From Phaeosaccion multiseriatum (lineage: Eukaryota > Protista > Ochrophyta, other classes): DNA of 64,000 bases. Position 1 is the first letter of the stretch. Each line of letters begins with the position of its first letter. Shown piece after piece: positions 1-54,326 of this stretch. Below the pieces are notes generated by a model. The model was given only the letters and a program-made list of their open reading frames with translations. It was not told where the DNA came from and ran no database searches. A program made the translations under genes and the position numbers. Location: NCBI GenBank assembly GCA_965112735.1, contig OZ218964.1, positions 248,001-312,000 of the forward strand, in the 5' to 3' direction.

Positions 1-1069
1 CAGCCAAATGCTTCGCAGTCGCCAGCCCAAGCGCCCCCAGCCCACCGCTGATAACGTAAGTCCCGTCTCGCACGACGGGAATGCCACACTCAGGGCTACT
101 GAGCACAACCTTCCCAATGTGCTTCGCAGTTCTGAGGAAGTTCATTGTCTCCGCAAGCTCATCCCTTAAGTCGAATGTCTTCACTGGTAGCGCCTCGGCC
201 CTGCCCGCCTCACTGTCCGCTGTCAGCTGCTCCAGCCCAGCGAACGCCCAGCCCTGCTTCTTGGCCTTGAAGTCGTCTGCTATCATGGAGTCCAGCGCAA
301 TCCGGTCGTACAGCACGTCGGGCCTGGCAGCCTTCATCGCCTCCCTGGTCCACACGCCTCGCTTGCCGATCTCCATGAAGCGCCCATTCTTCGTCAGCAG
401 CTCCAGAGAGTAAGGGATGAAGTTGTCCGACAGGCAGTTCAGCACCACATCCACCTTCGCAGCTCCCATGGAAGCCTTGAAGGCCTCCGCATCTCGCGAC
501 GACGCAATGTGCTTCACGCCCAGACCTCGCAAGTAGGCGTGCTTCTCCTCGGATCCAGCAGTGGCGTAGATCTCCGCTCCGATGCGCTGAGCAATCTGCA
601 CAGCCACCAGACCCACTCCACCTGACGCGGCATGGATGAGCACCTTCTCACCACGCTTCAAGCCAGCGAGTTGCTCAAAGGCGTGCACCACTGTGAGCCA
701 CGCGATAGGCAGCGCTGCCATGTCATCGAAGGTCCTGTTCGAAGGCATGTTGGCCAGGCACACGTCACTTGTCGTTACGTGGGAGCGGAAGCAGCCCTTG
801 TCCGGAAACCCGTAGACCTTGTCTCCCACTTGAAAGCGCGACTTTCGCGATGCTCGAGTGACCACTCCCGATAGCTCGATGCCAGGCAGTCCAGGGTCGC
901 CAGGGTACAGGTCGAGCACATTCAGCACGTCTCTGAAGTTGAGCCCCACCGCCTTGACACAAATTTCAATCTCCCTGTCCTGCAAGGCAGTGTCTCTCTC
1001 GGAAGGGAGTACGTCCCTGCGCTTCAAGCCTCCCTCGATGCTTCCCCTCGCTATGAGATCGAAGGAGAA
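1..1069. repeat. Direct repeat copy 1 (ER domain + KR N-terminus of module 3), apparently identical to 5154-6222
   Basis: Same sequence at offset 5153. ORF-track translations 81..413/5234..5566, 632..874/5785..6027 and 765..962/5918..6115 are identical. Confidence 0.95.
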
Positions 1070-4000
1070 GGGAAGGCGGACTACCGAGGAGCGAGTCAGC
1101 TGAGGCGTCTCGCACTCTCCTCCTTGCACACGCACGTCCTGATTCTGGAGGGGAAGACACAGCACCAAGCTCATGTCCTCCACATCCGCTTCCACGACCA
1201 TGATCTGCATCTGTGGCCGCTCGATACGAACGGAGCGAATTATGCCAAAGACCAGCATGTGTGCCCACCCCTCGCCCCCCCCGCTCAGCGTGTCGTGTAG
1301 TAGCACCATCAAGGGGACTGGTCTCTTGGCCAGCTGCTGCGTTACCGTCAGCAGCTTCTGTGCTTCCTGCTGAGCGGCGCTGGCTGATGACCTTGCCGTC
1401 TGTCCCTCCTCTCTTTCACCGCCGAGCACGTATAGCACTCGCGACCACTCGCCCCTCTCCAATGCCCTCACCACATCCTGGTCATAGACAGACTCCTGCA
1501 CACGCAGCGTCACGTGCTCGGGCATGGACTGCTCAATCCGCTTCACCAACGCTGCAGCTGCACTTACTCTATCTACCAAAGCCAGCCACGTCTCCTTCTC
1601 CACACCATTCTTCCCCGTGGTGGTTGCCAGAGCCAGCGCCTCGTCTGGCTGCCACTCCAGATAGTATAAGGCTCGACGAAGAGGGTTCAGGTGCGTGAAG
1701 CCCTTGGCCCTCTGCAGCTTGACGCCCTTCATGGTCACGAGCACGTACTGGCTGTCAAAGTCGGCAATGACAATGTCAAAGTTGACGCTGTCGCGCTTGT
1801 CGCTGATCTCGGTGAGCACGGTATGCACCCACACCTTGTTCCCTCTGATGGCGCCCTTCGCAACCACGTCATTGCATCCAGCTGGCAAGAATGTACCACC
1901 CTTGGTCAGCTCAGAAGGCAGAAGCGCAAGCATGGTGTGTGCGGCACTGTCCAGCACGGCGGGGTGGAGGTAGAATCCACGCACCTCCCACTCAGAGCAC
2001 AGGTTGGGGTCCTGCGCTGTCGCCACGGACAGAGCCTGTCCCTCGGCAGTGTACAAGCGCTCTGTCCGCCTGAAGCGGGGGCCGTAGTTGAAGCCGGCCT
2101 TGGCGAACGTGGCGTACAGCTCACCCGAAATGTCGCGCTGCCCCACTGCCTCCTGGATGCTCCTCACGTCCATCATTGCAGTATCCTCTCTTGCCTCCAG
2201 CACCACTGACGCCGCCCTGGCCACAGCCTCACCTGCCTTGCCGCGGGGGCCGCCCGTGATCCGCGTCTTGCCGTGGGCAGAGAGGAACACGTTCACCTCC
2301 GAGCATGCCACCGTCGTGGACCCATCCACCATCCGCTCCACCCCAGGCACACGGGCACCTGCCACCTCCAGCGGGGCCGTGAAGACGAGGCCCTTCATGC
2401 GCGCCTGGCCGTCGGCGGGGAAGGCCTCGCCCCTCAGCAGCGTGGCCAGGGCCAGCTCAATGTAGCCCATGCCCGGCATGAGCACCACCCCCCCCACTGC
2501 GTGCTCCTGCAGCAGGCCCTTGAGCCTTGGAGAGAATGGGCAGGACAGCAGCACCCCGCCCTTCTCATCTCGCACCCCTCCACTCGGACAAAAAGCGTGA
2601 TTATCGCTCTTGTACCACGGGAAGGCCACACGATTTGGGAAGAGCGCCTCCTCCTTGACGAAGGGGCCCCCATCGCGATTCATGCCAGCCGTCAGTACGG
2701 AGTCAGGCTTGTTCCCGTAGCTCCTCAGCAGCACGTGTGCGTTCGTTCCTCCCGCCCCGAACGAGCTCACCCCCACCAACATATCTCCCTCGTCCTCCAG
2801 CTCCACCATCGCCGACGGGAGCTGCACGGGGAAGCCGTCCATGTCCAGCTCCGGGTTGATACTCTCGAGGTGGAGGTTGGCCGGCACAGCGCGGTGCTGC
2901 AGCATCAAGACGGCCTTGATGACCCCGGCAATTCCCGCCGCACCCTCCAGATGGCCAATGTTGGTCTTGACCGCACCCAACACCAGCGGGAAAGAGTCGT
3001 CACGGTTCTTCCCGTACGTGGCCCTGAGAGCACTCATCTCGATGTGGTCACCGAGGGAGGTTCCCGTGCCGTGCGCCTCCACGATGCGTACCTCGGAGCC
3101 CTCTCGACCGGCCTCACGCAGCGTCGCCTCGATGAGTCTCTGCTGAGCGGCGGGGCTCGGGGCTGTGAGGCGGGCACTGGTTCCGTTGTGGTTCACGGCA
3201 CAGCCCTCAATCACAGCGAGGATCGTGTCTCCGGCAGCGAGGGCGTCATCTAGACGTTTCAGCACAACGGCACCGCACCCTTCACCCCGCACGTATCCGT
3301 TTGCCGACGCGTCGAACGTCTTGCAGCGCCTGAGAAGGGCATGGGTAGCGTGAGGGGAGTTGTAGTCGGCGGCGCAAGTAGGACGAGACGGAGGAGCAGA
3401 ACCATAAGTGCGGAGGAACGAAAAGGAAGAACTTACCAGTCCGGCGACAGGAAGCCGCTGCCCTGAATGTCCTCAAAGGCCACTGGCCCGAGCAAGCAAT
3501 TGACGCCCCCGACGACAGCGGAATCGCACTTGCCCATGCGTAAGCTGCTGCAGGCGTTGTCCAAGGCCACCAGCGATGACGAGCACGCCGTGTCAGTGGT
3601 CATGGACGGCCCCTGCAGCCCCAGCACGTACGAGAGCCGATTGGCAACGCCACATTGGACGCGACCCATAGTGCGGTATACTCCAGCCCCTACATGCTTG
3701 CCCTGGTAGCCCCAGTCGCCGAGGCTCATCATGCCGATGAAGACGCCTGCCCGACTGCCCGCCAAGCTTGCTTTGTCGCACCCCGCGTTGACCAATGCCT
3801 CGTATCCAACCTCCAGCATCACTCGCTGGTGCGGATCCATCGCAGCCGCTTCGGCAAACGAGATGCCGAATACGGCGGGGTCAAACATTTCCACCTCAGC
3901 AATGAAGCTGCCTTGCCAATCCTCGCTCCCCTCTTTTCCCGCCCACCGGTTCAGAGGGGCAGTCTGAATGCAGTCAGTACCTGCTCGCAGCATTGACCAG

Positions 4001-7000
4001 AAGGCCTCTGGACTGTTCGAGCCCCCCGGAAAGCGGCACGCCATGCCCACAACAGCCAGGGGGGCAGTCATGCTACCTCCAGCCGGTTCAGCATTCCTGT
4101 CCTCATCTTCACCCTCCTCAGCCCCCAAGACCAAGCCCTCGAGCCACTCTGTCAGCGCTGCCACTGAGGGGTAACTGAAGAGCACGTCGTTGGGGACCGG
4201 CACGCCGAAACGAGCTTGAAGTCGACTCCGAAGCTCCACCGTAGACATGGAGTCCAGCCCAGCCTCCATCAAAGGCCTCAAAGCGTCGAGCTCGATGCCT
4301 GCTTCCCCAATGCATGCTTTTGCCATCTCCATGATTAAAGCCTGCAGCATGGGCTTTCGCTCACCCTCCGACAGCTCCAGTAGGTCGCGCTTAACCTCGG
4401 TAGTCACACTGTTGCTAGCCTTGTTCTGCGGTCCCACCATCGAAGCCTCTCTAACGAGAGCATCGAGCATCCCCGGGTTGCTAGCCGTCTCAGAGAAGGC
4501 GGGCCAGTCCATGCCAGGCAGAACCAAGAGCTCGCGTGATGCCGCAGATGGGGCTGACACGCCGGCATCAAGCGCCGCCATACCCAATGCCTTACTGATG
4601 AGCCCAACGCCGGCCATCTCCAGACTGGCCATGGCAGCTTCGGACCGAGCGGCCATGCCAGCTTCGGCCCACGGCCCCCACTGGAGGGCCACAGAGCTGG
4701 AGTAACCGAGGCGTCGACGATGCTGCATCAACCCGTCCACAGCAGCGTTGGCTGCAGCATAGTTGGCCTGGCCTGCATTGCCTAACACACCTGCCATGGA
4801 TGTGTAGGACACAAAGAAGTCCAAGGGCCAGGCCAGCTGCAGCGACAGCTCGTGCAGATTCCAAGCGCCCTCCACCTTCGGCTTGAAGACCTCTTCGATA
4901 CTCTCGGGCGTCTGGTCCACCAGCAAGCGATCGTCGAGCACGCCGGCAGCATGGATGACACCTCGCACGGGCGGCATGCTGCTGAGCGCCGTGCCTAGGG
5001 CCTTCCCAAGCGACTGTGCGCTAGACACGTCGCACGATACAGCCCTGGTGCTCACCCCGCCGGGCACGTTGAGAAGCTCCTCCCACAGCGCCTGGGAGTC
5101 CGCCTTGACCTTTCCCCCTCGCGAGAGCAGTACAAGATGACGAGCTCCTTTATCAGCCAAATGCTTCGCAGTCGCCAGCCCAAGCGCCCCCAGCCCACCG
5201 CTGATAACGTAAGTCCCGTCTCGCACGACGGGAATGCCACACTCAGGGCTACTGAGCACAACCTTCCCAATGTGCTTCGCAGTTCTGAGGAAGTTCATTG
5301 TCTCCGCAAGCTCATCCCTTAAGTCGAATGTCTTCACTGGTAGCGCCTCGGCCCTGCCCGCCTCACTGTCCGCTGTCAGCTGCTCCAGCCCAGCGAACGC
5401 CCAGCCCTGCTTCTTGGCCTTGAAGTCGTCTGCTATCATGGAGTCCAGCGCAATCCGGTCGTACAGCACGTCGGGCCTGGCAGCCTTCATCGCCTCCCTG
5501 GTCCACACGCCTCGCTTGCCGATCTCCATGAAGCGCCCATTCTTCGTCAGCAGCTCCAGAGAGTAAGGGATGAAGTTGTCCGACAGGCAGTTCAGCACCA
5601 CATCCACCTTCGCAGCTCCCATGGAAGCCTTGAAGGCCTCCGCATCTCGCGACGACGCAATGTGCTTCACGCCCAGACCTCGCAAGTAGGCGTGCTTCTC
5701 CTCGGATCCAGCAGTGGCGTAGATCTCCGCTCCGATGCGCTGAGCAATCTGCACAGCCACCAGACCCACTCCACCTGACGCGGCATGGATGAGCACCTTC
5801 TCACCACGCTTCAAGCCAGCGAGTTGCTCAAAGGCGTGCACCACTGTGAGCCACGCGATAGGCAGCGCTGCCATGTCATCGAAGGTCCTGTTCGAAGGCA
5901 TGTTGGCCAGGCACACGTCACTTGTCGTTACGTGGGAGCGGAAGCAGCCCTTGTCCGGAAACCCGTAGACCTTGTCTCCCACTTGAAAGCGCGACTTTCG
6001 CGATGCTCGAGTGACCACTCCCGATAGCTCGATGCCAGGCAGTCCAGGGTCGCCAGGGTACAGGTCGAGCACATTCAGCACGTCTCTGAAGTTGAGCCCC
6101 ACCGCCTTGACACAAATTTCAATCTCCCTGTCCTGCAAGGCAGTGTCTCTCTCGGAAGGGAGTACGTCCCTGCGCTTCAAGCCTCCCTCGATGCTTCCCC
6201 TCGCTATGAGATCGAAGGAGAATGGGAGGTGCGCGTCTGCTGAGGGCGCCAGGTGAGGCGTGAGGTATCGTCCGTCTCGCACCCACACGTCCTGCCCCAG
6301 TGACGCAATGGTCCAGCACTTGGGCAGGCACTCGCTGCCCACGTCCACCACCGTGATGGCTAGTGAAGGGTGCTCGATACGAGCGGTTCGAATCATGCCG
6401 TACACCCAGTGATGCCTCCACCCCTCGCCGCCGCTTAGTGTGTCCTGCACCAGCACCATCAAGGGAGCTGGCCTTCGTAAAAGCTGCTGTAGCAACAGGA
6501 GGAGTGTCTGTGCCTCTTGGCTGGGGCTCTGCTGCTTGCCGCCGAACAAGGTGCACACCACACGGCCCCATCCTGCTGGCGCTTCTGAAGCGAGGGTGGA
6601 GTCGTCGATGCTCCTGACCTCCCTCTCCGTCAGTGTCACAGAGATGGGCAAGCTCTCTTTCGCTGCCTTGTCCAAGCTGCCACGAGCGCCGCTGGTGAGG
6701 AGCAGCCAAGCTTCCTCTCGCTCTTCCACGTCACCTCTGCTGCGGGAGATGGAATCGTTGGGCAGCCACTGTAGAGAATACAGCGCTCGGGTGACGGGGT
6801 TGGTGCGGGAGAAGCCTCGGGCCAGCTGCATCCGGAAGTGGTTGAGCTGCACGAGCACTTGCTTCGTCTCGAAGTGTGCTATCACGACGTTGCACTCGAT
6901 CGCAAGAGCTTGAGAGTCCACCTTCTTCACCACCGCATGCACCCACACCTTCTCGCTCGTGATGGCCCCTCGCACAAGCACCTCTTCGCAGCCGGTGGGC

Positions 7001-10000
7001 AAGAAGACGGCGGCAAAGGCCTTGCTCGTCAGCTCCTCAGGCAAGAGCGCCAGCATGGTGTGCGCGGCATTATCCAGCACTGCAGGGTGGAGGTAGAAGC
7101 CGCTGATCTCCCACTCCGCCGATAAGGCTGCCATCCATTGCCGCCGCAACCGACAAGGCCTGTCCACTGGCGGCGAACAGATGCTGCGTTCGGACAAAGC
7201 TGGCACCGTAGTCATACCCAGCACTGGCAAGCTTGAGGTACAGCCCCTCGGCGATGTCTTCGTCCCCCACCGCGGCTCTCACCCGCGCCACGTCCAATGT
7301 CTCTGCCTCCGTCCTTGTGCGCAATTGAAGGGAAGTCGCCTTCGCCACCGTCTCTCCAGCCTTGCCGTGGGGACCTCCGTTAAACTGCACGCTGCCGCGG
7401 GCAGTGATGAAGGCACTGACTTCAGAAGCGACCACAGTAGTGGAGCCCTCCACCGTACGGTCCACACAGGGGGCACGAGCGCCTGCAATTTCCAGTGGAG
7501 CCATGAAGACCAGGCCCTTCAGGACCACTTGCCTCTCACCAGGGAAAGGCTTGCCCTTCAGCAAGGCGGCAAGGCCAATCTCGATGTACCCCATGCCCGG
7601 CATGAGCACCACTCCTCCCACCGCGTGATCTTGCAGCAAGCCCTTGAGCTGAGGGGTGAAGCGGCATGAGAGGAGTGTTCCTCCCTTCTTCTCGACGACG
7701 CCGCCGCTTGGAACCATCGCATGCGCCTGCTGCTCGAACCAAGGGAGCGCACGACGGGTGGGGAACAGAGGTGTGGGCTTGCCCAGCACTGCCGCCACTG
7801 CTCTGTCGAACGAGGCGGTGTCGCTCCCCTCCCGCCGCATGGACGGCTGCCACATCACGTCCGACCTCTCTCCCTCGCATTGCCGTGCCATGTTGATCAG
7901 CACAGAGCTGGGCCCAATCTCTACCACTCGTACACCTTCAGGCCTCTCCCGGAGAAGCGTGGTGATACTCTCCGCGAACAGCACCGGCGATAGCATGTGT
8001 TGCACCCAATAAGTCACCTGCGTCACCTCCTCCCCTCTCACCACCTCACCCGTCACGTTGGACACCAGGGGAATGCGTGGGGTGCTGAATGACACCTGCC
8101 TCAGAACCTCCTCCAGCGCATGTACAGCGGGCTCCATCAGAGGAGAGTGGAAGGCGTGCGACACCTCCAGGGCCTTGCAGCCCACCCCATCCGCCGTGAG
8201 CATCTCTACCACCTTGCCCACAGAGGTGCGCGCTCCAGAGATTACGCTCGCCCTCGGCCCATTCGACGACGCCAGCACCACTTCGCCTGCCACCCCCACA
8301 GCGGCGATGCTCGCCAAGGTTGTCCACCTGCTCGCCCTCACTGCGAACATCACTCCATCCCCCTCGGGGCAGGCCTGCATGGCGGCTCCTCTCTTGGCGG
8401 ACAGCATCAGCCCGTCCTCCAGCGACATGACGCCGGCCACGCACGCCGCCACTACCTCGCCCAGACTGTGGCCCATCACCATGGACGGCTCCACGCCCTC
8501 CGACTTCCACAGCTCACACAGGGCGTACTCCAGCACAAACAGACACGGCTGGCAGTAGCGTGTCTCCTTCAGCAGCGCTTGTGCACTCTCCTCTTCCTCG
8601 GCAGCAGGATATAGGAGCTCCACCACAGACTTGTCCAGCCAGGCCTGGTCCTGCAAGAGGCCATCACACCGCCGAACAGCTTCACGAAAGACCTCGCGCT
8701 GTTGAGGCAGCGAACGAGAGACACGCAAAGAGAGAAGAAGAGAGAAAAGCAGATGAGAAAGACGGCAGGAGGCCGAGGGGATGCGAAGCGACGGAGAAGA
8801 CAAGAGCAGCGCTGACAGATACATAGAAACAAACGAGCAAGCGAACTCACCGTATCGTAGAGCTCCTTGCCCATACCGGGGTACTGGGAGCCTTGGCCCG
8901 TAAAGAGAAAGACGGGCGGGGATGAGATTACTTCCGTACTCCTCCCCTTCGGTGCCTTCGAGCCCTCCTCCACTCTCGGTGCATCGCTGCTCAGCACCAC
9001 ATGAGCATTGGTGCCTCCTGCTCCGAATGAGCTTACTCCTGCGTACAAACGCTCGTTGCGGCCATTGGGGTGTCCCTCGCCACCCAGCGGGGTTAGTCTA
9101 GATGATGCAAAGGCCACCGCAAATCCATCAACATCCAGCTGAGGATTAAGCGTTGCGAGGTGCAGATTGCCTGGAGCAGCTCCGTGCTGAAGTGTGAGGA
9201 TGGCCTTGATGAGCCCCGCGATGCCTGCGGCGCCCTCCAAGTGACCAATGTTGGACTTCAACGCTCCGACAACGAGCGGGAAAGAGCTCTCCCGCCCTTC
9301 TCCATACACGGCTTTGAGGGCGCTCATCTCGATGGGGTCGCCAAGCGCCGTACCAGTGCCGTGAGCCTCCACGAAGTGAACCTCGCTGCCATCTACAGCC
9401 GCCTCCTCCAAGGCTGCCTGCATCAGCGCCTGCTGCGCGTCTGGACTGGGTGCTGTGAGCCGCATAGAGCGCCCATTGTGGTTCACGGAGCTTCCCCGCA
9501 CGACGGCCAGGATGTTGTCTCCGCTGCGCTCCGCATCGTCAAGCCGCTTCAGCACCAAGGCACCGCAGCCCTCTCCTCGGACGTAGCCGCTGGCCGATGC
9601 GTCGAACGTCTTGCAACGCCTGAGACAGGCATAGGAATGGCGGGGTTGGAAGCGGGGGAGAAGGATTGAGCTTCATGGTCTGCCCAACAACACATTACAA
9701 CTCAACTACTTCTGCGCGAACTCGATGCTTCCCAAGGCAAGCTCCCCCATTCGGCCGTACGTACCAGTCCTTGGACAAGAAACCTCCCTTGTCGAGCTGT
9801 TCGAAGGAACGGGAGCTGAGCAGCAGATTAACTCCTCCCACAACCGCAGCGTCGCACGTGCCGAAGCGAAGATAGCGACAAGCCGTGTCCAGCGCAACGA
9901 GCGAAGAAGAGCAAAGCGTATCAACCGATATGCTTGGGCCTCGCAAGCCCAGTACGTAGGACAGGCGATTTGCAGGGCAGCCCGCTGACTCACCCATCAC

Positions 10001-13000
10001 GGAGTAAGCTTTAACGGCCCCGTCTTTGTTCAGCGCGGCCCAGTCGCCGTGCTGCATGGAGCCCACGAACACTCCAGTGTTGCTGTTGCGCAGCGTGTCC
10101 ATAGAGAAGCCTGCCTCGTGCAGCGCCTCGTAGCCGACCTCGAGCATGATGCGCTGAGCGGGGTCCATGGCCTCGGCCTCGACCACGGAGATGCCAAACG
10201 TGGCGTTGTCGAACATCTCCACGCCGTCGATGAAACCTCCGTGCCACTCCTTCGCCGCACCAGCGAGTCTTCCCGGAGGCATGGCGGTGATACAGTCCCT
10301 CCCCTCCAGCAGCATGGACCAGAAAGCGTCGGGACTGTCTGCGCCTCCAGGGAAGCGGCACGCCATGCTCACTACTGCCAGCGGGGCAGAAGCGTCAGCC
10401 CCCTCTTGAGACGATGGCATCCTCCTGGGCAGGCTGCTCGCGCTTCCCTCCATGAGCGCAGTGCCCAACCACTCCGCCAAGGCCGCCACGGTGGGGTGGG
10501 CGAAGAGGGCGGCACTGCTCACGGGAATGTCTGTGAGCAGGTGCAGACGCTGCCGCAGTTCCATGAGCGCCAACGAGTCCATGCCAGCCTCCATGAGAGG
10601 CCTGTTCATGTCGATACCGACAGCGCCTGAAGTGCTGGAGAGGACGATGTCGGAGATGACGGATTGGAGCCTCTCTTGACGCTCAGATGGACTGACACCG
10701 CGGAGCTCTATTGCCAAGGAGCTTCCGGCCGATTTCGTTGGGGCGGGCAGTAGCTTGAAGGCCTTCCTATTTCTGAACGGGGACGCTGCCACGTCTTTCT
10801 CTTCCTCCGTGTGTGAGGTGGGCATCCCCTCCAGGATGACGTGGGCATTGACACCGCCAAGTCCAAAGGAATTGACAGCTGCAAAGGGGACAAGGACAAG
10901 CAGCGAGAGCGGAGGAACATAATGGTAAGAAAGAGCAGGGCAAGCTACCAAGCATGTAGCCCCCAAGCCCACTTTTGCCAATATCTAGAAAAGGTGGGTG
11001 AGAAAGGGACTAGGAGAATACGTGACTGAGTGGATGGGTGAGTGAGTGAGTGAGTGAGTGAGTAAGTGAGTGAGTGAGTGAGTGAGTGAGTGACTGAGTG
11101 ACTGAGTGAGTGAGTGAGTGAATGCGTGAGGGTGCGTAAGTGAGTGAGTGCGTACGTGACTGAGTGCGTGAGTGAGTGAGTGAGTTAGTGAGTGAGTGAG
11201 TGAGTGAGTTAGCGAGTGAGTGAGTGAGTGAGAGAGTGAGTGAGTGAGTGAGTGAGTGAGTGAGTGACGGAGTGAGTTAGTGAGTGCGTGAGTTTGTGCG
11301 TGGGTGAGTGAGTGAGTTGCTGAATGAGTGCGTGAGTGAGTGAGTGAGTGAGGGAGTGAGTGAGGTAGTGAATGCGTGAGTGAGTGCGTGAGTGAGTGGG
11401 TGAGTGAGTAAGTGAGTGAGTAAGTGAGTGAGTGAGTAAGTGAGTGAGTGAGTTGGTGAGAGAGCGAGTGGGTGAGTGAGTGAGGGAATATGTGGGTGAG
11501 TGAGTGGATGAGTAAGTGAGTGGGCGAGCGAGGGGGCAGTTAGACTTGAGGACCTTTGTGAGAATCGCTGGCAGTAATATGAGACCGTCACGCACCTCCG
11601 ATTCGGCTAGCGATTGGGGTCATGCCTCCGAGGGGAGGTAGCAGAGCGGTATTGCCCTCCGTCTTCAGCGCGGGGTTCAGCGTGGACAGGTTGAGGTTGG
11701 GGGGCGCTTGGCCGTGCCTGAGCACCAGCACAGTCTTGATGAGCCCCGATATGCCTGCCGCAGCCTCCGCGTGCCCGAGGTTGGTCTTGCCGGCTCCGAT
11801 GACGAGAGTGCGGGGGCTCGCCATGTTGGGGTTTCCGTACGTGCCAGCGATAGAGGCCCACTCTGTGCAGTCCCCGAGAGGGGTCCCTGTCCCGTGCGCC
11901 TCGATGAAGCTCACGTCGGACAGTGCAATGCCCGCCTCCGCCACGGCGTGGAAGACAGCGGCCTTCTGTGCCGCTTCGCTGGGCGCGGTTAGGGTTGTGC
12001 CGAGGCCCGTATGATTGACGCAGGAACCTCGAATCACCGCCAAGATGTTGTCCTTCGCCTCAATGGCGTCCTCATGGCGCTTGAGCACGATGCTGCCACA
12101 GCCCTCTGCGTTGGCAGCCGGGGGGGACGAACAACAAGCGGAGGTGACTGAGAAGTGAGTGAGTGAACTGGAGCGAGTGGCAGCCGACTGCCCCGCAAAA
12201 AGGGTTTTCTTACTCTCTTTCTCTCCCTACTCCTCTCTCCCTCTCCCTCTCAACCTCCCCCTCCTCCCCCTCTCCTCTCTCCTTCTCGCCCTCTCGTTCT
12301 CCCCCCTCCCCCTCTCAATATCTCTCTTCCCCTCCTCCTCCGCCTCTCCCTCGCCCTCTTATTCTCCCCTCTCCTTCTCTCCATCCCTGCCGTATCGCCG
12401 GTGCCGCTCGTGCTCACCTGCCCGCACATAGCCGTCGGCAGCGACGTCGAAGACCATGCTCTTCTCCTTAGACTAAAGCACGCGCAGGAAGGACATGGTA
12501 GCGAAGGGCTCAGGACTTGTCATGATAGACACTCCTCCGGCAAGGGCCATGTCGCAGTCGCGGCTTTGGAGGCTTCGGCAGGCCTGGTGCACGGCCACGA
12601 GAGAGGAGGATGAGGCCGTGTTGATGGTCTGCGAAGGTCCAGTCAAACCGAGGGCGAAGGAGACCCGATTCGCCACGAGAGCCTCCGAAGCGCCCGTCGC
12701 AACGTACGGTCCAGGAGCGTGGGACTGCACTTTGGAGGTCCAGTCTCCATTGCCGCATCCGATGAATACTCCTGTACAAAGTGGAGGAACGTGTGTGAAG
12801 GTCAGCAGCAACAACCACGCACAGCAGACACAGGCGGGCACCGAACGTGAAGTCTTTCGTCCCGCTTTTCTCTGTGGCACCACTCGATTTAACGAAAAGG
12901 AAAAGACGAAAGTAACGCAGGCATGGAGCACACCACACGACTTGGCTGCTAGACGGACCAGCCCAGCCATCCACACTACTAGAAGAAGGAAGAAAGATTG

Positions 13001-14037
13001 ACTCGCCTGTGTTGCTCTCAAGAAGGGCATCCTTGTAGAGTCCTGCGTCGCGAAAGGCCTCGTACGCCACCTCCAGCATGACTGTGTGCATATGCAGAAC
13101 AGAGAAACAGGAGGTGCAAGCCACATTCTGTGAAGAACAGCAAACAATAATGGAGAAGGGGGCGCCCGGGGGCCATCTCCCGCGCCCTGAAGTGAAGGAC
13201 TGGCAGGAAGGGAGGGAGGGGGACAGTTTAGCGTTGACGCTACCTTTTGCTTACCTCGCTGCTGAGGGTCCATTGCTGATGCCTCTGGATCAGAGATATT
13301 GAAGAATGCATTGTCGAAAAGTTCTACGTCGGAGAGGAAGCCTCCACGCGTTGGGTGCCCAGCTCCGCTGTGCTTGAGCTTGTCCAAGGCCCCAGGCTCC
13401 CATCTGAGGGAGGCGGGAGGGAGGAGGTTTTGCGGGGCGGGGGTGTAGAGTGAGGGGGAGAAAGACAACAGGCTCTACTAGATGTGGCTGTAGTAGTAGT
13501 CCAGCGACCACTTCACCCCTCTCAGCCACCCCCCGCTCAGCCAGCCATCATCATCCCACTTGTCTACCGTCCCAACCGTTTCTGCCGCTCGAAGGCCAGC
13601 TACGAAGCGAAAGATGCTGCTGAGTGGTAGGGCAACTGTGGCCAAGTTATTGCTTGTTACCAGCCAGCCAAGCGCCGTCTGGCTCACTCGCTCCTGCCTG
13701 CCTGGACGGGCTGCTGCCTGCCCATTTCCAAGAAGAAGGTCCAGGCAGCTCAGTTCCCACTCCCTCACCTGTTGATGGGGATGTCTGTGATGCCGCTGCC
13801 CTCTCTGCAGAGCAGCTCCCACAGCTCAGGGGCGGAGTTCACATCCCCAGGAAGGCGGCAGGCCATTCCCACAATGGCAATGTCGCCACCATGACGCCCC
13901 CCCCCCTTTTCGCTGGGGAAGGAGACAGGCACTCTCTCCTCTTTGTTGCCTGCTGCACCCAAACCAGTCGCGGTGCTGCCATATCTAGTTTCCCGCTTGT
14001 TTCTCTGTTGTTGCGAAGAAGGAATCAGGCGCTCCAT
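1..14037 (-). CDS. Multimodular type I polyketide synthase (5' part; continues beyond position 1): KS(S)-ACP-KS-AT-DH-ER-KR-ACP-KS-DH-ER-KR...
   Basis: KS motifs IAIVGMACRLPG, DTLCSSSL, DTACSSSL, EAHGTGT, KxNxGH, SFGxGGxNAH. AT motifs GQGSQ, GHSLGE, HAFHS. DH motifs HAVGGVVLMP and HPAVLD. ER motif LIHAASGGVG. KR motifs GGLGALG, HAAGVLDD, YAAAN. ACP motifs GMDSL and GLDSM. Introns read by eye: 13768-13404, ~13254-13082, 13006-12772 (GC-AG), 12417-12106, ~11595-10879, 9764-9620, 8850-8699, 3436-3330. The 3329-1 exon appears open to the window edge, which explains its absence from the ORF track. In-frame TAG at 12473-12475 and a +1 frameshift at ~7125. Confidence 0.95.
5154..6222. repeat. Direct repeat copy 2 (ER + KR N-terminus of module 2)
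   Basis: Matches 1-1069. Identity stops abruptly after GAAGGAGAA at 1069/6222. Confidence 0.95.
11025..11522. repeat. Degenerate (TGAG)n tetranucleotide array inside a PKS intron
   Basis: About 500 bp of TGAG units seen directly. Confidence 0.95.
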
Positions 14038-14819
14038 CTCCCTCGTCTTGTTGCTTGGCTCCCCTACTCACAACCTGACCAAGAGACAGTAAGGCACACA
14101 GTCGGGCAGGCGTCGAAACAGCCCCAGCCGAAGCGCACGAAGCAAGGGGGGGACAAATTCCTCCCCTCTATTTCTTCCTGAATGATTTCCTCCCCTTTTC
14201 CCCAGCCAGGAAGCTCTCAGTCTGGAAGGCAGCACGTCGGTGGTGGAGCAGAAGCTCAGTCGTCTGCCCTCTGATATCCCCTCTTAAACTTGCAACATCT
14301 CGCTCTCGATCTAATAACTCCACTCTCTTCCGGAATCGTCTGCGAAATCCGGCCCGAAATCCTCCGCCAAGAAAGCCAAAAGGGTACTTGAAAGTAAAAA
14401 AAACCCGCCGGAGAGGCTCCGCCGAAGAGGCTTTTCACGAATAATTATATTATTATGGGGAGAGATGAAGAGCGACGCAACGCAGTTAGGGGGAAATAGG
14501 ACAGGTAGGCAAGCTGTGATGCGGTAGTAGTTCTTGTGGAGCGTATGTGTTAAGACAGCCACTGCAGGGCCAATAACGCGGCCTATATACACAGCCCGAA
14601 GCAGACGATAGGTACATATTTACGTAAGTTTAAATAAGGCTAACCAATGATCTGTAGCCGCTTGCTGCTGCTCGACCTGGAGAGGCATCATCCCGACGGT
14701 GCCGGCAATGCGTGCGGGCACTGGCACACCGCGCTCCTCCTCCGAAAGAACGACGTCGTTGGCGCCGCCCAGCCAGCCACACCATCGAGCCAGGCTCGCA
14801 GCTACTACCCTTTGCTCTG

Positions 14820-15090
14820 CTGCGCCACAGCACGTCTCGTCCTCCGTGCTCGAGCAGTACCAGGTGGGACTCAGGCAGGTTGCTCACTCGTGATGTCTGC
14901 CCTGCACCACGTGCCGTCCTCCGTGCTCGAGCTGTCGTGGTGGGACTGGGGCTGTTGGAGACTCGTGACCTCTGCCTGCGGCCGCTACAGCACGTTTCGT
15001 CCTCCGTAATACAGCTGTACCGGGACTGAGCCTGCTGACCCTTGCTCTCTCCACTGCAGCATGTGCGGCCCTCCGTTCTAGAATGCTGCC
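14820..15090. repeat. Four diverged copies of a ~40-bp motif (CAGCACGT..CGTCCTCCGTGCTCGAGCTGT) at 70-80 bp spacing
   Basis: Copies near 14822, 14901, 14981 and 15051. Minus strand reads LLEHGGRDVL / QLEHGGRHVV / LYYGGRNVL in different frames. Confidence 0.6.
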
Positions 15091-15462
15091 TCTGCCTCCT
15101 CTGCCGTGCCTCGCCCTCTGCTGGTGCATATCCCTCCTCCGGCGTCTACTGCCTCCGCCCCTCCCCCTCCGTCTTCCCTGGTTGCCACCCGCGTCTGCCG
15201 TCGTGGTGGAGGCAACGTAGTATTCCTGAGAAACCAGCTCGTGGTTGGATGGGCAACACTACCCACTATTCTTAGTGTTGCGCAATTCTGTTGCCCATCT
15301 ATACTCTGTGGCATCACCCCTCTCTCACCTCCTCGGGCTCTGGGCTCCATGGTGGTGGGGATTTTCTTTCCAGGCTGAGATAAGCTGGTTCTGGTCCCCA
15401 TTCTCGAACACAAGAGTCCCGCAGACCACTTGGGGTGAGGAGAGTCACCCATCACTCGCGGT

Positions 15463-16065
15463 TCATGCTGGCAGCTGGGGGGGTGCCACTCCCTCATCTC
15501 GCAGGAACTGCTCGAATCGCTGCGTGATTGAAGCTACCTGCACACCGTCCAAGCTTGGCTTTAGAAATATGTCCCCCGCTCTGAGTTTCTTCGTTTCCGT
15601 GTGGCGCCAGAAGCAGCTTTGGTGGAGCGTGCAAAGGTTCCGATAGCCCTTGTGGCACTCGAGGAGCAGCCCTAATCGGACTTGACCCTTGGGAATGGCC
15701 CTCCCGCAGAGCTTGCACTTTGATCTGCCAGAGGGGTCCACCTCTGCGCAAGCGACATACGGCCGCGCCGCGCGGTCTCGCTTTGCTCCTGGAGTGAGAG
15801 TGGGGTCATCGTCCTGGAAGCGCTTCACGGCCAAATGCGCCATGTCGTTGAAGGCTTTCTTGCCTTTGCCTGCTTTCGCAACGGTCATAGCGGCTTTCAG
15901 TGCCTTGTCCTGCCTCTTCCGTGCTTTTGTAGGCAACGGTGGAAGCGCCTTTCGATGTCTATTTTGCCCTTTCGTGCTCCTCCTTCGGTTTCCGTTGGCG
16001 CGGCACTGGGTCACAGATGGACATACAGTACGCGTTGTGGTGCTCCGGAGATTTCCCTTGGCCAC
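15463..16065 (-). CDS. Small stand-alone PARP-type zinc-finger protein (first in-frame ATG at 15888)
   Basis: AEVDPSGRSKCKLCGRAIPKGQVRLG...LHQSCF matches the zf-PARP CxxC...HxxC pattern. Confidence 0.7.
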   Translation of the reverse strand: MAKGNLRSTTTRTVCPSVTQCRANGNRRRSTKGQNRHRKALPPLPTKARKRQDKALKAAMTVAKAGKGKKAFNDMAHLAVKRFQDDDPTLTPGAKRDRAARPYVACAEVDPSGRSKCKLCGRAIPKGQVRLGLLLECHKGYRNLCTLHQSCFWRHTETKKLRAGDIFLKPSLDGVQVASITQRFEQFLRDEGVAPPQLPA

Positions 16066-33860: not shown

Positions 33861-36718
33861 TTAGCCCTCGAGGTCGTGTCCCTCTGACTCATCAGTTCTC
33901 CCCATTGGAACAAAGTTGATACCAGCCAGGATCCTGTGTCGAACCGATCGTTCGTGTCGGGCCCTCTGGAGCGCTACGGCTAATCGTCGCCGAATAACGC
34001 AAACAGCTCTCGCGTAAGCCCTCGTGTCAAGATGTTCGTGCCCCCCAGCCATGTGGGTGGCGAGTGTTTTGATAAACATCTGTGCTGACGGGCCAAATGC
34101 ACCTTGCTGATCCATCCCAAAAGGGACGAGATGATACCTCGTGGGGTCATAGTGGATATCTCCACCCTGGCCCTCCATGCCTCCATGTGGCACACCATAC
34201 CTGGTGCGCTTGGTGGCTTCAGCCTTCTTGGCTGCAGCGAGTGCCTCCTTCGATGCCTTGGCCCGATTGGTAATGTTGGTGGCATCCGTGAGCGTGACGT
34301 CGATCATGAGGGACTTGTGGCCGTCCCCATATTCATGATCGGATGGAAGCTCAAACATCCTGGGGGGAGTCACGATGTCCATCTCCATCTGCTTGGCCAC
34401 GTGGGCGTCACCTCTCACGGCGTTGCTCCCCCCTCTCCCTCGTCGCGGGGTGACCGTTCTTGCCCTCATGAAGAAGGGGAAGCTGGTGTTCTGGACGATC
34501 CCTCTGCCCAGGCCCTCGCTCTTCAGCAGGGCGACAAGTGCCTTCTGCACAGCGTCGTGTTGGGGTGTGCTGAGCCCCGTCTTCGTGCAGGTGATGATGT
34601 GCCCCTCCGTCAGCGCCTTGCTAGGGCACTTATGACAGTCCTTGCTGTAGGTGGGGTCAAAGCCAAGTCTTCGCCGAATGGCACTCTTGTGCTCGGCGTC
34701 GGTGAGGTGGAGTGGTGCTCCCCCTGCCGTCCTGGTCGGCTGAAGGTGGAGCCACGCACCAGCACCTTTCACGCTGTGGCTGAGGGCTCTGGCCAGGTAC
34801 TTCTCCCGTTGAACCTGCTGTGGGATGGCTTTTAGTCGTTCCAAGAAATCCGCCCTCGCCTTCGACGTGAGGAGCTTGGTATAACGCTTCTGGGCGCCTC
34901 GCCGCTCTCCGTGTCGGCTGTGTGGAATGGAGGGTCCTCCCTCGTCCAACATCTTGGTCTCCTCTGACCGCCAGCGTGGCCGGCCGTCCTCATCATCGTC
35001 ATCATCACCGCCTGGTTCCACGTCATGCTCATCCTCAGGGGCTGCGTCACTGCCACCATCTGGGTCTTCGTCACTTTCACCCTGTGGGTCTTCATCACTC
35101 CCCCCCCCTGGGTCTGCCGCGCTATCAGAGGTTGGTCCATCTGCGGTCCCCTGCTGCCCTGCAGCCGCGTCGCACCCTTCCGCACCCACCCCAGGGTGTA
35201 TCCCTGCGGCCCCAACATTATCACCGTCGTCGAAGTCTGCTCCTTCACCCCCAGAGTGTATCACATCCCCCCCGGGGGCATCACTCGCAGCCGGCTGGTC
35301 CCCTCTGCCTCCGACAGGTGTGTGCCCTTCATGCTCTGGGGTGTCGTCTCTCTCCGGGAAGAGCGTGGTGATCAGCCATGGTTCTCTCCATCTGTTGTCA
35401 CTGAGGTGGGAGATGATTGGCGCCGCGCTGTACAGGGATGCTGTGATTGCCCATGGGGGGAGGTCACAGTATGTGGGCCCGAGCGCCCCTGGCAGCAAGC
35501 CTCCCCCCTTGGGGAGGAGAAGGGCCTCCGGTCTGCTGATGTGGCCGTGGGCGAGCAACACAGCCCATCCTCGCGGAAGGGACTTGAGGAAGCGCTCCTG
35601 TTGACTGAGAGCACCTTGGGCTGCGTCTGCCTTGGGCGCGCTGGGGAGTTGGTCAAAGACACGTGCTGCTGTGTGGATGACCCGGATATGGTATCCGTTG
35701 GGTCCCTGCCCACACTGGGACAGGGCCTGTCTGCTCCGCGGTCCCACCTCCCTGAGGGCGAAGGGGAGGGCTTGCATCGCCCCTGCCAGGAAGGCTGCGT
35801 CACAGAGCTCAGCTTGGGGGACGAGTCCCAAGCCCCCATCGCCCACCTTCAGTCTCGCCTGTCTCGCTCGCAGCTCATCACCCATGAGAGGGAGCATCCG
35901 GAAGGTGTCACTGCTCCTCTGAAGTGCCCTCTCCTCTTGCGCTGCCTTGTGCGCCTTGAGGATCGCCGTAACCGAGGTGCGCCCTGGATCCAGGGAATTG
36001 GTTGCTGTGTAGCCCACAAGAGTATCGAAGAGGGTAAGGGTGGGTCGGATGAAGTCCGGCGGGGTTACCCTCATGAGGAAGTTGGCCTTGGGGGTCAGCG
36101 ACCTCACTGCCAGGTACATCGAGCTGGAGGAGTCGTCCATGTGCCCAGCGAGCTCGCAGAGCTGGGGCATCACGCTGGTCATGCCTAGCTGCTCCTCTAT
36201 GTAGCGTTCCACAAAGGCACGCGTGCCAACTGGCGCTCCCACCACTACAGACCCTTCAGTGGCTAGTCGGGTGATGTACCTGGTGCCCCCCTGCGCCCCC
36301 TCCGTCTTCTCAAGCCATGCCCTCTCCTGTGGTGACAGCACCCGCCCCTTCCCCAGTAGCACGACGCACTTGGTGAGATTGAGGGAGAGGCTGACCTCCG
36401 CAAGCCTACGGGCCATGAACTCCTGGCTCTCCAGGTTCGCGCGGTGATAGAGCGGCTCACCGCATGCGCCACTCACTCGCATATCATCCAGGTAGGCGGT
36501 GGCTCGCACTCCAGTGCCCTGCATGAGCCTATTGTGGTCACGCAGGATGGGTAGGAGGAGGACGGCGTACATGAGAGCGCCAATGGGGCAGCCCTGCAGC
36601 GAGCCTTGGGTGGAGCGGAAGCTGGCCACCATGTTGGCCCCCTGTGAGGTTGTCGCTGACTCCTCACAGATCCGGAGCACCAACACACGCACCTTGATGC
36701 CAGAATTCGACCTCGACC
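33861..36718 (-). mobile_element. 5'-truncated non-LTR retrotransposon with RT and restriction-like endonuclease (CRE-like)
   Basis: Uninterrupted, intronless 943-aa frame with QGCPIG and AYLDD RT motifs, GGLGL, CxxC-H-C knuckle (CHKC..HIITC), then MDIV..LMIDVT..AEATKRTRY..LVPFGM..GAFG endonuclease motifs. N-terminal RT motifs are missing. Confidence 0.88.
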
Positions 36719-43100: not shown

Positions 43101-43972
43101 CGCGCCGCCCTGCCCCTCCACACTGTTTGGAGCTTCGTCGCCCGGAGGTCGTGCCGCCTCGCCTTGCTGATGGTCCGGGCGAGGCTACATTTCCAGGCCA
43201 GCTGAATGGTTTGTGCCGCATTTTCGCGGCGTGCGTTTCCACTCCTTTTGCGCTCCTTGATGATGTCTTTGCGGCGCCGGGTCATCTTGCGCCTGGCTCG
43301 GTACCCGCGGTAGTGCCTCTGAATCACCACCGCCTTGAGGCCGCACTTCTTCTCGTAACGCCACGTCAGCGCCTTCCTCAGGGCGTGCTTTTTGATGGCC
43401 AACACGCGCAGGTCGATCGCAATGGGCACACGTGGCCCCTTTTTGTTCTTGTTCAAGTGCTCGTTTCCGGCGTCCATGTCCCCCGCCAGCCGAGCCCTCG
43501 CTGCCTCAATGGACGACATTGCCTTCTTCTTCTCCTTCACCTCAAGGCGGACGAACATGGGCCTTTCGCCGAAGAACTCCTGCCTGGTCCGGATGAAAGG
43601 GATGGTGAGGAGCCGGGGGAGGGTCGCTTGTTGCGCCTCGATTGAGGCCACCAGGACTCTCTGCAGAGGGAGGAGGAGAGGGAGAGAGAGAGAGAGTGAG
43701 AGAGGTGTTGTTGGGCATTCATTCGGAGAGGTTTCAAATGGCGGCGTGGGATGCGGCGAGGAGTGGGACGTCACAGGAGCTCGGGGAGGGTATAAGTATA
43801 AGTCAAGGCTCTGCTCGCCATGTCAGAGGAGTCGCACTCTCTGCCTCGAGGAGCTCTCCTCCTGTGAGAGGAGCTCGACTCTTTGGCCCTCCGTGGTAAG
43901 GCAAGAAGGAAGAAGATAAGGACGCAGCAGGGTCCTCTTCTGCTTCCCCCTTGTCTCTCTTCTGCCACCCGA

Positions 43973-52833: not shown

Positions 52834-53021
52834 CGGTGGGCCTTTTCGGCTGCTGAGTGCGCTGCAACAAGCTTGCGATCACATCTTCACTGCTGCGAGT
52901 GTTGACCCTGCCACCACAGTTTCTGATTCGTGATCATAGCTTCATTTTCCTTCTCTTCAGGGCATGCTCGAATTATCTCATGCCCTGGCTGTTCCCCCCA
53001 TGGGTTCGGTGAGGGTGTGAT

Positions 53022-53620
53022 GAGGAGGAGGAGGAGGAGGAGGAGGAGGAGGAGGAGGAGGAGGAGGAGGAGGAGGAGGAGGAGGAGGAGGAGGAGGAGG
53101 AGGAGGAGGAGGAGGAGGAGGAGGAGGAGGAGGAGGAGGAGGAGGAGGAGGAGGAGGAGGAGGAGGAGGAGGAGGAGGAGGAGGAGGAGGAGGAGGAGGA
53201 GGAGGAGGAGGAGGAGGAGGAGGAGGAGGAGGAGGAGGAGGAGGAGGAGGAGGAGGAGGAGGAGGAGGAGGAGGAGGAGGAGGAGGAGGAGGAGGAGGAG
53301 GAGGAGGAGGAGGAGGAGGAGGAGGAGGAGGAGGAGGAGGAGGAGGAGGAGGAGGAGGAGGAGGAGGAGGAGGAGGAGGAGGAGGAGGAGGAGGAGGAGG
53401 AGGAGGAGGAGGAGGAGGAGGAGGAGGAGGAGGAGGAGGAGGAGGAGGAGGAGGAGGAGGAGGAGGAGGAGGAGGAGGAGGAGGAGGAGGAGGAGGAGGA
53501 GGAGGAGGAGGAGGAGGAGGAGGAGGAGGAGGAGGAGGAGGAGGAGGAGGAGGAGGAGGAGGAGGAGGAGGAGGAGGAGGAGGAGGAGGAGGAGGAGGAG
53601 AAGGAGGAGGAGGAGGAGGA
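53022..53620. repeat. About 200-unit (GAG)n/(CCT)n trinucleotide tract
   Basis: Pure repeat with a single AAG interruption near 53601. Confidence 0.98.
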
Positions 53621-54326
53621 GGGGAGTCACGGGGGTTTAGAAGGCGGGGGCAGGGGGGTGGCGGGGGGATACCGTCCACCAGACCCACTTGACCAAGCGC
53701 TTTGGTGCCTTACTCCTCCCAACCCCACCCTTCGTTAGAGTCTATCCATCAAACGCACCTGTGGAGACGCTCCTCTGTCCTCACCCGCAGAGCTGCTATA
53801 GCCTGGGGGCTGGCACCAGCAGACTTGGACAGGTTAACCAGATGAATGCGCCAAGAGGAAGGGGGAGGAGGAGCAGCAGCAGCGGCAGCAGCAGTAGCAG
53901 CCGCAGCACTGGAGGCAACAGCAGCCAAGTCAGCACTACGGGCAGCAGTAGAGGGCTTCCCCCTGCTGGTTCTCCGGCCCTCCTGCTGCGGGGCGCCGAC
54001 GAAAGCCGCGTCAGGCAGAGGTGATGCGCAAGTGCGTTCCACACGGGAATTCCTGTCCGCTCTTTCAAGCTCCTTCCTCCCTCAACCTCTTCCTTATTGG
54101 CTACTGCACAGTTTCAATAACCGCTGCCGTCTCCTGATCCTCAGGTTCCTGCGCTACGGTTATTTGTCCCTTCTTTTCTGACCATTTTTTCATCTAACTT
54201 CAGGCTTCGTGCCCTGGAGCTCTTATAATCTGTCCGCCAAAAGTAATTTCTGAAATTTTGTAACCGCCTTTTATCCCTATTCCTGCAGGTGCAGGACTGA
54301 CTGAATTTCCCCCCCCCCCTTGGTGC

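Follow-up and report, generated by a model that had tools for sequence, protein, structure and literature searches.

The 64 kb window (the whole stretch of DNA that was analysed) carries at positions 1 to 14037, on the minus strand, the 5' part of a PKS gene, which was delineated from Pfam matches, open reading frame pieces, spliced contigs, and a reading of the splice sites. The first ATG lies at 14037-14035, nine exons are visible, and the gene continues past position 1. Four GT..AG introns are removed in contigs from run X5, an independent sample, as is characteristic of the spliceosomal introns of a nuclear eukaryotic gene, and the locus is a real, transcribed, intron-split PKS gene of a stramenopile alga. 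Intron 4 (12106..12417, 312 nt) and intron 5 (10879..11595, 717 nt), both GT..AG, were placed from spliced contigs and splice sites; a microsatellite whose translation is a series of THSL repeats fills intron 5.

Domain prediction, which had been proposed in an earlier note made from the sequence, was performed with Pfam on stop-free pieces and gave the order KS1-ACP1-KS2-AT-DH-ER-KR-ACP2-KS3-DH-ER-KR, the last KR being cut after its start. This agrees with the layout described in that note, in which module 1 is KS-ACP, module 3 is KS-DH-ER-KR, and neither has an AT. Pfam and the motifs GHSLGE and HAFHS likewise place an AT in module 2 only, a count that applies to the three modules in the window, which are the first three of the gene.

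In module 1, KS1 (10832..13884, exons E1-E6, minus strand like all features described here) was identified by Pfam and motifs. Its active-site cysteine is replaced by serine (TASSSS, 12602-12619), while both histidine motifs are kept (HGTGT, 11882-11896; NLGH, 11771-11782). ACP1 (10454..10687, Pfam; GMDSL, 10571-10585) follows KS1 in the same exon with no AT between them. With an N-terminal position, serine for cysteine, and both histidines kept, module 1 resembles KS-S loading modules, as judged from its motifs. KS-S loading domains are documented in polyene PKSs, where those of RimA and NysA share these three features and are thought to prime via decarboxylation (PMC4540446). The polyene loaders, however, have their own AT, whereas KS1 runs straight into the ACP, and unlike theirs the KS1 frame is interrupted by a stop codon, an in-frame TAG at 12473..12475 in exon E4 (12771-12418). 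DNA-like contigs of runs X1-X3 cover this TAG with 0 differences, and the spliced X5 contig that spans it shows a single difference, the position of which is not listed.

Pfam shows module 2 to be complete (KS-AT-DH-ER-KR-ACP). KS2 (8992..10384, Pfam and spliced contigs) is condensation-competent by its Cys-His-His motifs (TLCSSS, 9902-9919; HGTGT, 9349-9363; NIGH, 9241-9252) and contains an intron at about 9620-9764. It ends in GTNAHVVL (8992-9015), and after a linker of 26 residues (8914..8991) the AT starts with VFLFTGQG (8890-8913), all in a single open frame. Since a spliced X5 contig spans 8851-9244 with zero differences, this short KS2-AT junction is present in the mRNA. The AT domain (7835..8913), recognized by Pfam, motifs, and structure-match scores, is of the malonyl type (GQGSQ, 8884-8898; GHSLGE, 8456-8473; HAFHS, 8144-8158) and is interrupted by an intron at 8699-8850. 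The post-AT region (7739..7834) consists of 22 residues and then LFPTRRALPW (7739-7768), so that both the start of the AT about 25 residues past the KS end and the LFP.R.A.PW-type linker after it are as the earlier note had read them. The rest of the module comprises DH2 (6775..7684; HAVGGVVLMP, 7598-7627), ER2 (5320..6225; HAASGGVG, 5764-5787), KR2 (4651..5217; GGLGALG, 5179-5199; YAAAN, 4747-4761), and ACP2 (4129..4362; GLDSM, 4246-4260), each found by Pfam and motif. A one-base shift of the reading frame occurs in DH2 near 7124, where all contigs of four runs, which are 2-4% diverged, omit one base; this copy may be broken there, or the assembly may be wrong.

In module 3, KS3 (2726..4062, Pfam) is also condensation-competent by its Cys-His-His motifs (TACSSS, 3574-3591; HGTGT, 3059-3073; NIGH, 2951-2962), and its inferred intron at 3330-3436 matches the KS2 intron in position and phase. 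The junction to the DH (2615..2725) has neither an AT nor a linker domain, as read from the motifs in a frame that is open for 1157 residues: GTNAHVLL (2726-2749) closes KS3 and is followed by 27 residues, LFPNRVAFPW (2615-2644), and then DH3 (1661..2560, Pfam; HAVGGVVLMP, 2474-2503). ER3 and the start of KR3 (1..1108, Pfam) are 98.9% identical in DNA to ER2-KR2 (5154-6261). The DH, ER, and KR motifs are undamaged in modules 2 and 3, and the complete reducing sets ascribed to both modules are therefore present.

In cis-AT PKSs, a linker domain of about 100 residues lies between KS and AT. The 26-residue junction found here compares with about 116 residues in CurL (4mz0) and with 90-140 across about 430 other junctions, and the transcript contig bears out the absence of the linker domain; when aligned, the interval from KS end to AT start is 116 residues in CurL and 20 in this gene. 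Measured from motif to motif, the KS-AT distance is 37 in the window, against 108-142 in 48 AT homologues and nearly always 90-140 in the junctions of the 150 best representatives. Modules 1 and 3, with 18-27 residues from the KS end to an FPW-type motif, have no AT in continuous open frames, a second departure from canonical cis-AT architecture. The AT itself is nevertheless akin to cis-acting malonyl-ATs. Its best solved match is the malonyl-specific AT of CurL, which scores 256 bits; the trans-ATs DisD and PksD, as well as FabD, score about 87-113. Together with GHSLGE and HAFHS, the CurL match supports the malonyl specificity that the earlier note had proposed from HAFH. CurL is also the best single-stretch match to the C-terminal half of KS2 (211 bits), but its linker domain is complete and its post-AT linker is longer than that of the window AT.

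The KS and AT phylogenies that the earlier note had called for were inferred from few taxa (27 and 33 rows, with half of each KS used). In the KS tree, the window KSs fall within a eukaryotic clade (99/99), separate from the bacterial trans-AT KS clade (100/99). In the AT tree, the window AT clusters with linker-less protist ATs from Chrysoparadoxa, Vitrella, and the apicomplexan-like PKS P0124 (97/94), a clade that adjoins cyanobacterial-type cis-ATs and not the free-standing trans-ATs. Motif-to-motif distances are equally short in these relatives (29 in Chrysoparadoxa, 38 in Vitrella, 41 in P0124), and the short junction and the two clades together assign the gene to a linker-less protist lineage. 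The note's mixture of AT-less and AT-bearing modules stands, but its interpretation as a trans-AT-type assembly line with an inserted AT is not supported. The AT-less KSs also lack the flanking subdomain of about 100 residues that bacterial trans-AT KSs carry: none was found after the window KSs, where a match to PF16197 was partial and below threshold. A simpler reading is that the gene comes from a PKS branch of stramenopiles and alveolates that has lost the KS-AT linker domain, and in which modules, once duplicated, may lose or regain the AT and often go without it. KS2 and KS3 pair in the KS tree as sister paralogues (98/96) with 70% identity; as one precedes an AT and the other does not, the loss or gain of that AT is recent.

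Gene models from another ochrophyte, Chrysoparadoxa australica, stand closest among the eukaryotes in both trees; they are 39-60% identical and fragmentary, with contigs that end within genes. Two of them (P0091 and P0293) have a KS, 22 residues, and an AT, like the window KS2-AT, and two others (P0287 and P0295) have a KS, about 24 residues, L[FY]S.RQ.FPW, and then DH-ER-KR-ACP, like window KS3. In the AT of P0293, glycine replaces the active-site serine. The apicomplexan TgPKS2 is a further protist modular PKS whose KS-AT linkers were described in 2022 as "short compared to bacterial" ones (PMC9301873). TgPKS2 and P0124 differ from the window gene in their reducing set and in having an AT in every module (four KSs and four ATs in P0124). 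The combination of sparse ATs and missing linker domains is typical of a little-studied branch of protist PKSs and is not unique to this locus.

Since KS2 and KS3 are condensation-competent, ACP1 and ACP3 need malonyl units from outside their own modules. On balance, we lean towards the reading that the locus holds the beginning of an expressed modular type I PKS gene of an ochrophyte, a member of the linker-less protist lineage, in which embedded ATs would load the AT-less ACPs. The likeliest source of malonyl for ACP1 and ACP3 would be the few ATs embedded in the same synthase, AT2 included. In place of a rigid linker domain, AT2 has a short tether on either side, of 26 and 22 residues. Delivery could be direct or by hand-over from ACP to ACP, as proposed for LasC/LasD. 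KS1 would generate an acetyl starter by decarboxylation of malonyl-ACP1, and modules 2 and 3 would each add one malonyl unit and reduce it fully. The saturated or long-alkyl product and the cytosolic location that the earlier note proposed are putative.

The closest functional precedent for this layout is the fungal strasseriolide synthase LasC/LasD, described in 2026, in which only modules 2, 4, and 7 have embedded ATs and the loading module is AT-less; it works in Aspergillus oryzae without a trans-AT, and its loading ACP receives malonyl from the ACPs of module 2 (PMC13749307). Within the window, the three modules show the same sparse embedding of ATs and begin with an AT-less putative loading module. 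The comparison is one of layout; LasC/LasD is fungal, contains methyltransferases, an ACP quartet, and a TE end, and has a loading module that retains the carboxyl group. Among algae, multimodular PKSs mostly lack integrated ATs, and in 2015 heterokonts were known chiefly for iterative cis-AT enzymes (Shelest 2015, PMC4661987). The algal and haptophyte PKSs, including the PKZILLAs, are giant, intron-bearing, and module-duplicated, with most modules AT-less, as is seen here (PMC4661987; 10.1101/2024.01.29.577497). These "trans-AT" enzymes were described as fully AT-less with ATs assumed in trans, whereas the window gene keeps an AT in line.

That assumption bears directly on the main alternative, in which a free-standing AT encoded elsewhere loads the AT-less modules and the embedded AT serves module 2 only. 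Shelest et al. assumed trans-ATs for algal multimodular PKSs (PMC4661987), the PKZILLA authors name acyltransferases among the extra enzymes needed (10.1101/2024.01.29.577497), and free-standing AT-only proteins of 300-450 residues occur among the AT homologues. No AT gene, however, lies in the remaining 50 kb of the window, and a scan of all 64 kb found no second AT, KS, or ACP outside the PKS gene. Together with the position of the window KSs outside the trans-AT clade, their want of the flanking subdomain, and the functioning of the similarly AT-sparse LasC/LasD without a trans-AT, this makes loading in trans somewhat unlikely.

Within the preferred reading of loading by embedded ATs, a more specific and rather speculative proposal, to which we give little credence, is that each embedded AT has been freed by the loss of the linker domain and serves both its own ACP and the upstream one, giving one AT per two modules. 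The AT would move on a pair of tethers 20-26 residues long, and the upstream ACP would visit the same KS in any case to hand on its chain. The alternation in the window, with an AT in module 2 and none in modules 1 and 3, would fit this proposal, which may hold across the linker-less protist PKS lineage, and near-identity of the AT DNA across the genome's many PKS modules would be maintained by gene conversion.

It is improbable that the locus, or at least module 1, is a copy that broke recently, that is, a transcribed pseudogene in a large PKS family with fast turnover, which would make the AT pattern little informative. The TAG, on which the X1-X3 contigs agree, the frame shift near 7124, the missing cysteine of KS1, and the many near-identical paralogous stretches implied by read depth all point in that direction. 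Against this, the frames are otherwise open for 1281 and 1157 codons, modules 2 and 3 keep every catalytic motif, the transcript is correctly spliced at four or more introns in an independent sample, and AT-less junctions of the same kind occur in intact Chrysoparadoxa models; moreover, the extra base at 7124 is missing from every read contig and may be an assembly error. Reported rates of ACP self-acylation are generally low, and we consider it highly improbable that ACP1 and ACP3 self-malonylate from malonyl-CoA with no AT involved. Self-acylation has been reported for TgPKS2, which falls in the same broad protist group (Keeler et al. 2023, as far as it is related in PMC13749307), but its modules have ATs, so that self-acylation there is no substitute for a missing one.

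Eukaryotic modular PKSs have barely been characterized, and the supply of extender units to AT-less modules is an open question whose first functional case was reported in fungi in 2026. The earlier note was right that such hybrids are poorly characterised in ochrophytes, but the general pattern is not new (PMC4661987, PMC9301873, PMC13749307), algal PKSs poor in ATs having been published in 2015 and short KS-AT linkers of apicomplexans in 2022; for this reason, the value of the locus is that of a good model system and not of a new principle. It offers a compact natural test case, with an AT-less loading ACP, one short-tethered AT, and an AT-less sister module. PKS engineers consider the KS-AT linker domain important for AT activity, and this lineage has dispensed with it. 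The sister domains KS2 and KS3 form a recent natural pair, with and without an AT, for a comparison of the kind made in PKS engineering.

In window 1-14100, long open stretches occur only on the minus strand. The first ATG past the upstream stop places the start of the polyketide synthase (PKS) at position 14037, and its coding sequence leaves the window at position 1. Pfam searches with eight stop-free pieces gave the domain order KS1, ACP1, KS2, AT, DH, ER, KR, ACP2, KS3, DH, ER, and the start of a KR, and this order and the motifs bear out the modules described in the earlier note: a KS-ACP module, a second module containing the AT, and a KS-DH-ER-KR module. In KS1, a serine replaces the active-site cysteine (TASSSS) and both histidine motifs are retained. 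The Cys-His-His set is complete in KS2 and KS3, which rules out KS3 as the non-elongating KS0 of a bimodule. The AT carries GQGSQ, GHSLGE, and HAFHS; both DHs carry HxxxGxxxxP, both ERs the nucleotide motif HAASGGVG, KR2 the motifs GGLGALG and YAAAN, and both ACPs the serine site G-x-DS-[LM] (GMDSL and GLDSM). Module 2 is complete and fully reducing. The N-terminus of the PKS has no hydrophobic leader, which would fit a non-plastid location.

Contigs from four public sequencing runs were placed on window positions 7000-12999, three of them (X1-X3) from one sample and the fourth (X5) from a different sample and study. The X1-X3 contigs join intron sequence to exon sequence and thus behave as genomic DNA. 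Run X5 has nearly zero depth within introns, and its contigs are joined at four places bounded by plus-strand CT..AC, equivalent to GT..AG on the coding strand, removing minus-strand introns at 8699-8850, about 9620-9764, 10879-11595 (intron 5), and 12106-12417 (intron 4). An apparent fifth intron, of the GC-AG type, in KS1 (13006-12772, minus strand, donor GCGAGT) is supported by an X5 loose end at 12775 that carries on into upstream-exon sequence. Three others on the minus strand, at 13768-13404, 13254-13082, and 3436-3330, are predicted from splice signals and from the homology of the three KSs to one another; translation across candidate splice junctions served for a phase check only. Based on this intron and contig evidence, the PKS gene is eukaryotic and nuclear, and an independent sample shows its transcription and splicing; bacterial contamination is ruled out by the four GT..AG introns that are absent from the spliced contigs. 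The KS2 and KS3 introns occupy the same codon and phase, indicating that the module duplication is later than the origin of that intron. Intron 5 is filled by a microsatellite that reads as THSL repeats, and a similar repeat (85-90% identical) is located at 59606-59781. Intron 4 is purine-rich and resembles (~75%) a long tandem array at ~53000-53630 that has a 9-base register.

Two features interrupt the reading frame. The first is a TAG codon, in frame and midway through KS1 (exon E4, 12473-12475, minus strand). The DNA-like contigs of X1-X3 show 0 differences from the window at this point; the spliced X5 contig that spans it (12418-12572, 155 bases) has one difference somewhere within the piece. 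A change of reading frame on the minus strand marks a one-base shift in DH2 near 7124, where one base is missing in every contig of all four runs. These contigs are probably paralogues, since they diverge by 2-4% from the window and have 5-15 times the single-copy depth, and the extra base in the window may be genuine or may reflect an assembly error. Outside the TAG and the DH2 shift, the frames are open over 1281 and 1157 codons. A hidden AT exon or a misassembly behind the AT-less modules was rejected because the KS1-ACP1 and KS3-DH3 frames are open throughout, the AT-less junctions are in unique sequence that lies outside the 98.9% ER-KR repeat, and DNA-like contigs show 0 differences.

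The KS-AT junction of module 2 is short. Between the end of KS2 (GTNAHVVL) and the start of the AT (VFLFTGQG) lie 26 residues in a single open frame, a length that excludes a linker domain, and an X5 contig over 8851-9244 with zero differences places this junction in the mRNA. When aligned with the bacterial cis-AT PKS CurL (4mz0), the KS part reaches residue 466 of the chain and the AT part begins at 582, two points that are 20 residues apart in the query. The motif-to-motif distance is 37 in the window versus 108-142 in the AT homologues having both motifs (n=48), with two exceptions, proteins from Chrysoparadoxa australica (29) and Vitrella brassicaformis (38). The 150 top-scoring representatives drawn from 1.8 billion proteins have KS-AT junctions that nearly always measure 90-140, and only protein P0124 is short, with 41 at all four of its junctions; this search returned mostly bacterial giants with many ATs and added a single further linker-less relative, P0124. 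Downstream of the AT, 22 residues precede LFPTRRALPW, and the equivalent stretch in CurL-type enzymes, as read from their sequences, is about 45-50 residues. Given the lengths of these two segments, module 2 lacks both halves of the linker domain, in agreement with the earlier claim that the KS-AT linker domain is missing (26 residues vs 90-140 elsewhere). Module 3 has 27 residues between its KS end and LFPNRVAFPW; in module 1, the KS end leads through 18 residues and a weaker version of the motif to ACP1.

Homology searches were run exon by exon, and the exon pieces for the KS and AT trees were translated separately. No close homologue from the P. multiseriatum genome was present in the protein collections searched. 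The top solved relative of the AT is the cis-AT of CurL (256 bits), compared with 87-113 bits for free-standing trans-ATs (DisD, PksD) and FabD enzymes; for the C-terminal half of KS2, the best single stretch is likewise CurL (211 bits). In a maximum-likelihood tree of KS C-halves (27 rows), the eukaryotic sequences from the window, Chrysoparadoxa, Toxoplasma, Cystoisospora, and P0124 formed one clade (99/99), and the bacterial trans-AT-type KSs formed a separate one (100/99). In the AT tree (33 rows), the linker-less ATs of the window, Chrysoparadoxa, Vitrella, and P0124 formed one clade (97/94) that adjoins cyanobacterial-type malonyl cis-ATs. The scores against solved structures and the AT tree rule out an inserted trans-AT. 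The proposal in the earlier note of an AT inserted into a trans-AT-type scaffold was thus not upheld, with the KSs outside the trans-AT clade and the AT beside cis-ATs. P0124 (XP_023973534.1), filed under Physeter catodon, has 3920 residues and four KS-AT modules with short junctions; in the KS tree it joined coccidian PKS/FAS KSs with weak support (84/49), in the AT tree it grouped with a Vitrella AT, and it is most likely a protist contamination of the sperm-whale assembly.

Gene models of Chrysoparadoxa resemble the window in that their AT-less junctions consist of the KS end, about 24 residues, a motif (LFSSRQRFPW or LYSTRQSFPW), and the DH; one AT-less model extends on through ER-KR-ACP. 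Taken together, the solved-structure scores, both trees, and these junctions show that the compact AT was inherited within a lineage of protist PKSs. The two Chrysoparadoxa loci, L001 and L002, are on contigs that stop within or beside the PKS gene. In L001, the gene for P0293 opens with an ACP, and separate AMP-binding and FMO-like genes lie ahead of it. P0293 contains a compact embedded AT (residues ~530-830) that is probably inactive, as glycine takes the place of the catalytic serine (GHGLGE) and GVGCQ that of GQGSQ. Apparently bacterial PKS fragments from a Legionellales MAG (P0279) and a JGI metagenome (P0271) have an F.R..YW motif about 20 residues past their KSs and lack both an AT and a linker domain, so AT-less, linker-less junctions are not exclusive to eukaryotes.

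KS2, from the AT-bearing module, and KS3, from the AT-less one, are sisters (98/96, 70% identity), and AT-bearing and AT-less KSs of Chrysoparadoxa also group together. AT presence varies among recent paralogues, and modules 2 and 3 differ by either loss or gain of an AT. The ER-KR DNA of module 2 (5154-6261) and module 3 (1-1108) is 98.9% identical over 1.1 kb, a stretch that reaches the window edge, whereas the KS and DH parts are only 72-77% identical, a pattern indicative of gene conversion or of a partial duplication in the very recent past. The X1 single-copy contigs have a depth of 65-82. Across the AT core (8000-8600), summed contig depth is about 50-290 times single-copy, a sum that does not equal copy number, with 12,000-16,000 in bins 8000-8199 and 8400-8599 and about 23,000 at position 8465. 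The adjoining KS-AT linker bin (8800-8999) is single-copy, and the KS and DH bins are at 5-18 times single-copy. The AT-core depth indicates that stretches with 95% or higher identity to the window AT are very numerous in the genome, which is consistent with a large PKS family whose AT DNA evolves in concert.

KS2 and KS3 are equipped for condensation, so ACP2 and ACP3 must carry malonyl. Priming by decarboxylation has been proposed for polyene loaders with a serine in place of the KS cysteine (PMC4540446), and if KS1 acts in this way, malonyl is needed on ACP1 too. The AT-less modules would most likely receive malonyl from the embedded ATs of the synthase itself, considering that ACP1 is tethered directly upstream of KS2-AT2, that the AT is held by short tethers and not by a rigid linker domain, and that a precedent exists. 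The fungal modular PKS LasC/LasD has ATs in modules 2, 4, and 7 only and an AT-less loader, no trans-AT was needed for it to make its product in Aspergillus oryzae, and malonyl was seen moving from the module-2 ACPs to the loading ACP (PMC13749307). The window PKS likewise has an AT in only one of its first three modules and none in module 1, and we infer a similar loading route. A free-standing AT encoded elsewhere in the genome may instead load the AT-less modules, but none was found in the remaining 50 kb of the window, which contain no further AT, KS, ACP, or KR. Self-malonylation of the ACPs, reportedly observed for TgPKS2 (as cited in PMC13749307), is a weaker alternative. Read colinearly, the three modules would yield a saturated C6 acyl chain, with the final product set by later modules.

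AT-poor multimodular PKSs of algae (PMC4661987), an apicomplexan PKS with short KS-AT linkers (PMC9301873), and a functional eukaryotic PKS with sparse embedded ATs (PMC13749307) have already been published. This locus adds an ochrophyte example backed by transcripts, a pair of recent paralogues of which one has an AT and the other lacks it, and tree evidence for a single origin of the linker-less ATs of stramenopiles and alveolates. Two other parts of the window are unrelated to the PKS: a long ORF on the minus strand that weakly matches reverse transcriptase (33861-36692), a retroelement remnant, and part of a gene encoding IQ, p25-alpha, and B-box domains (41510-43774).
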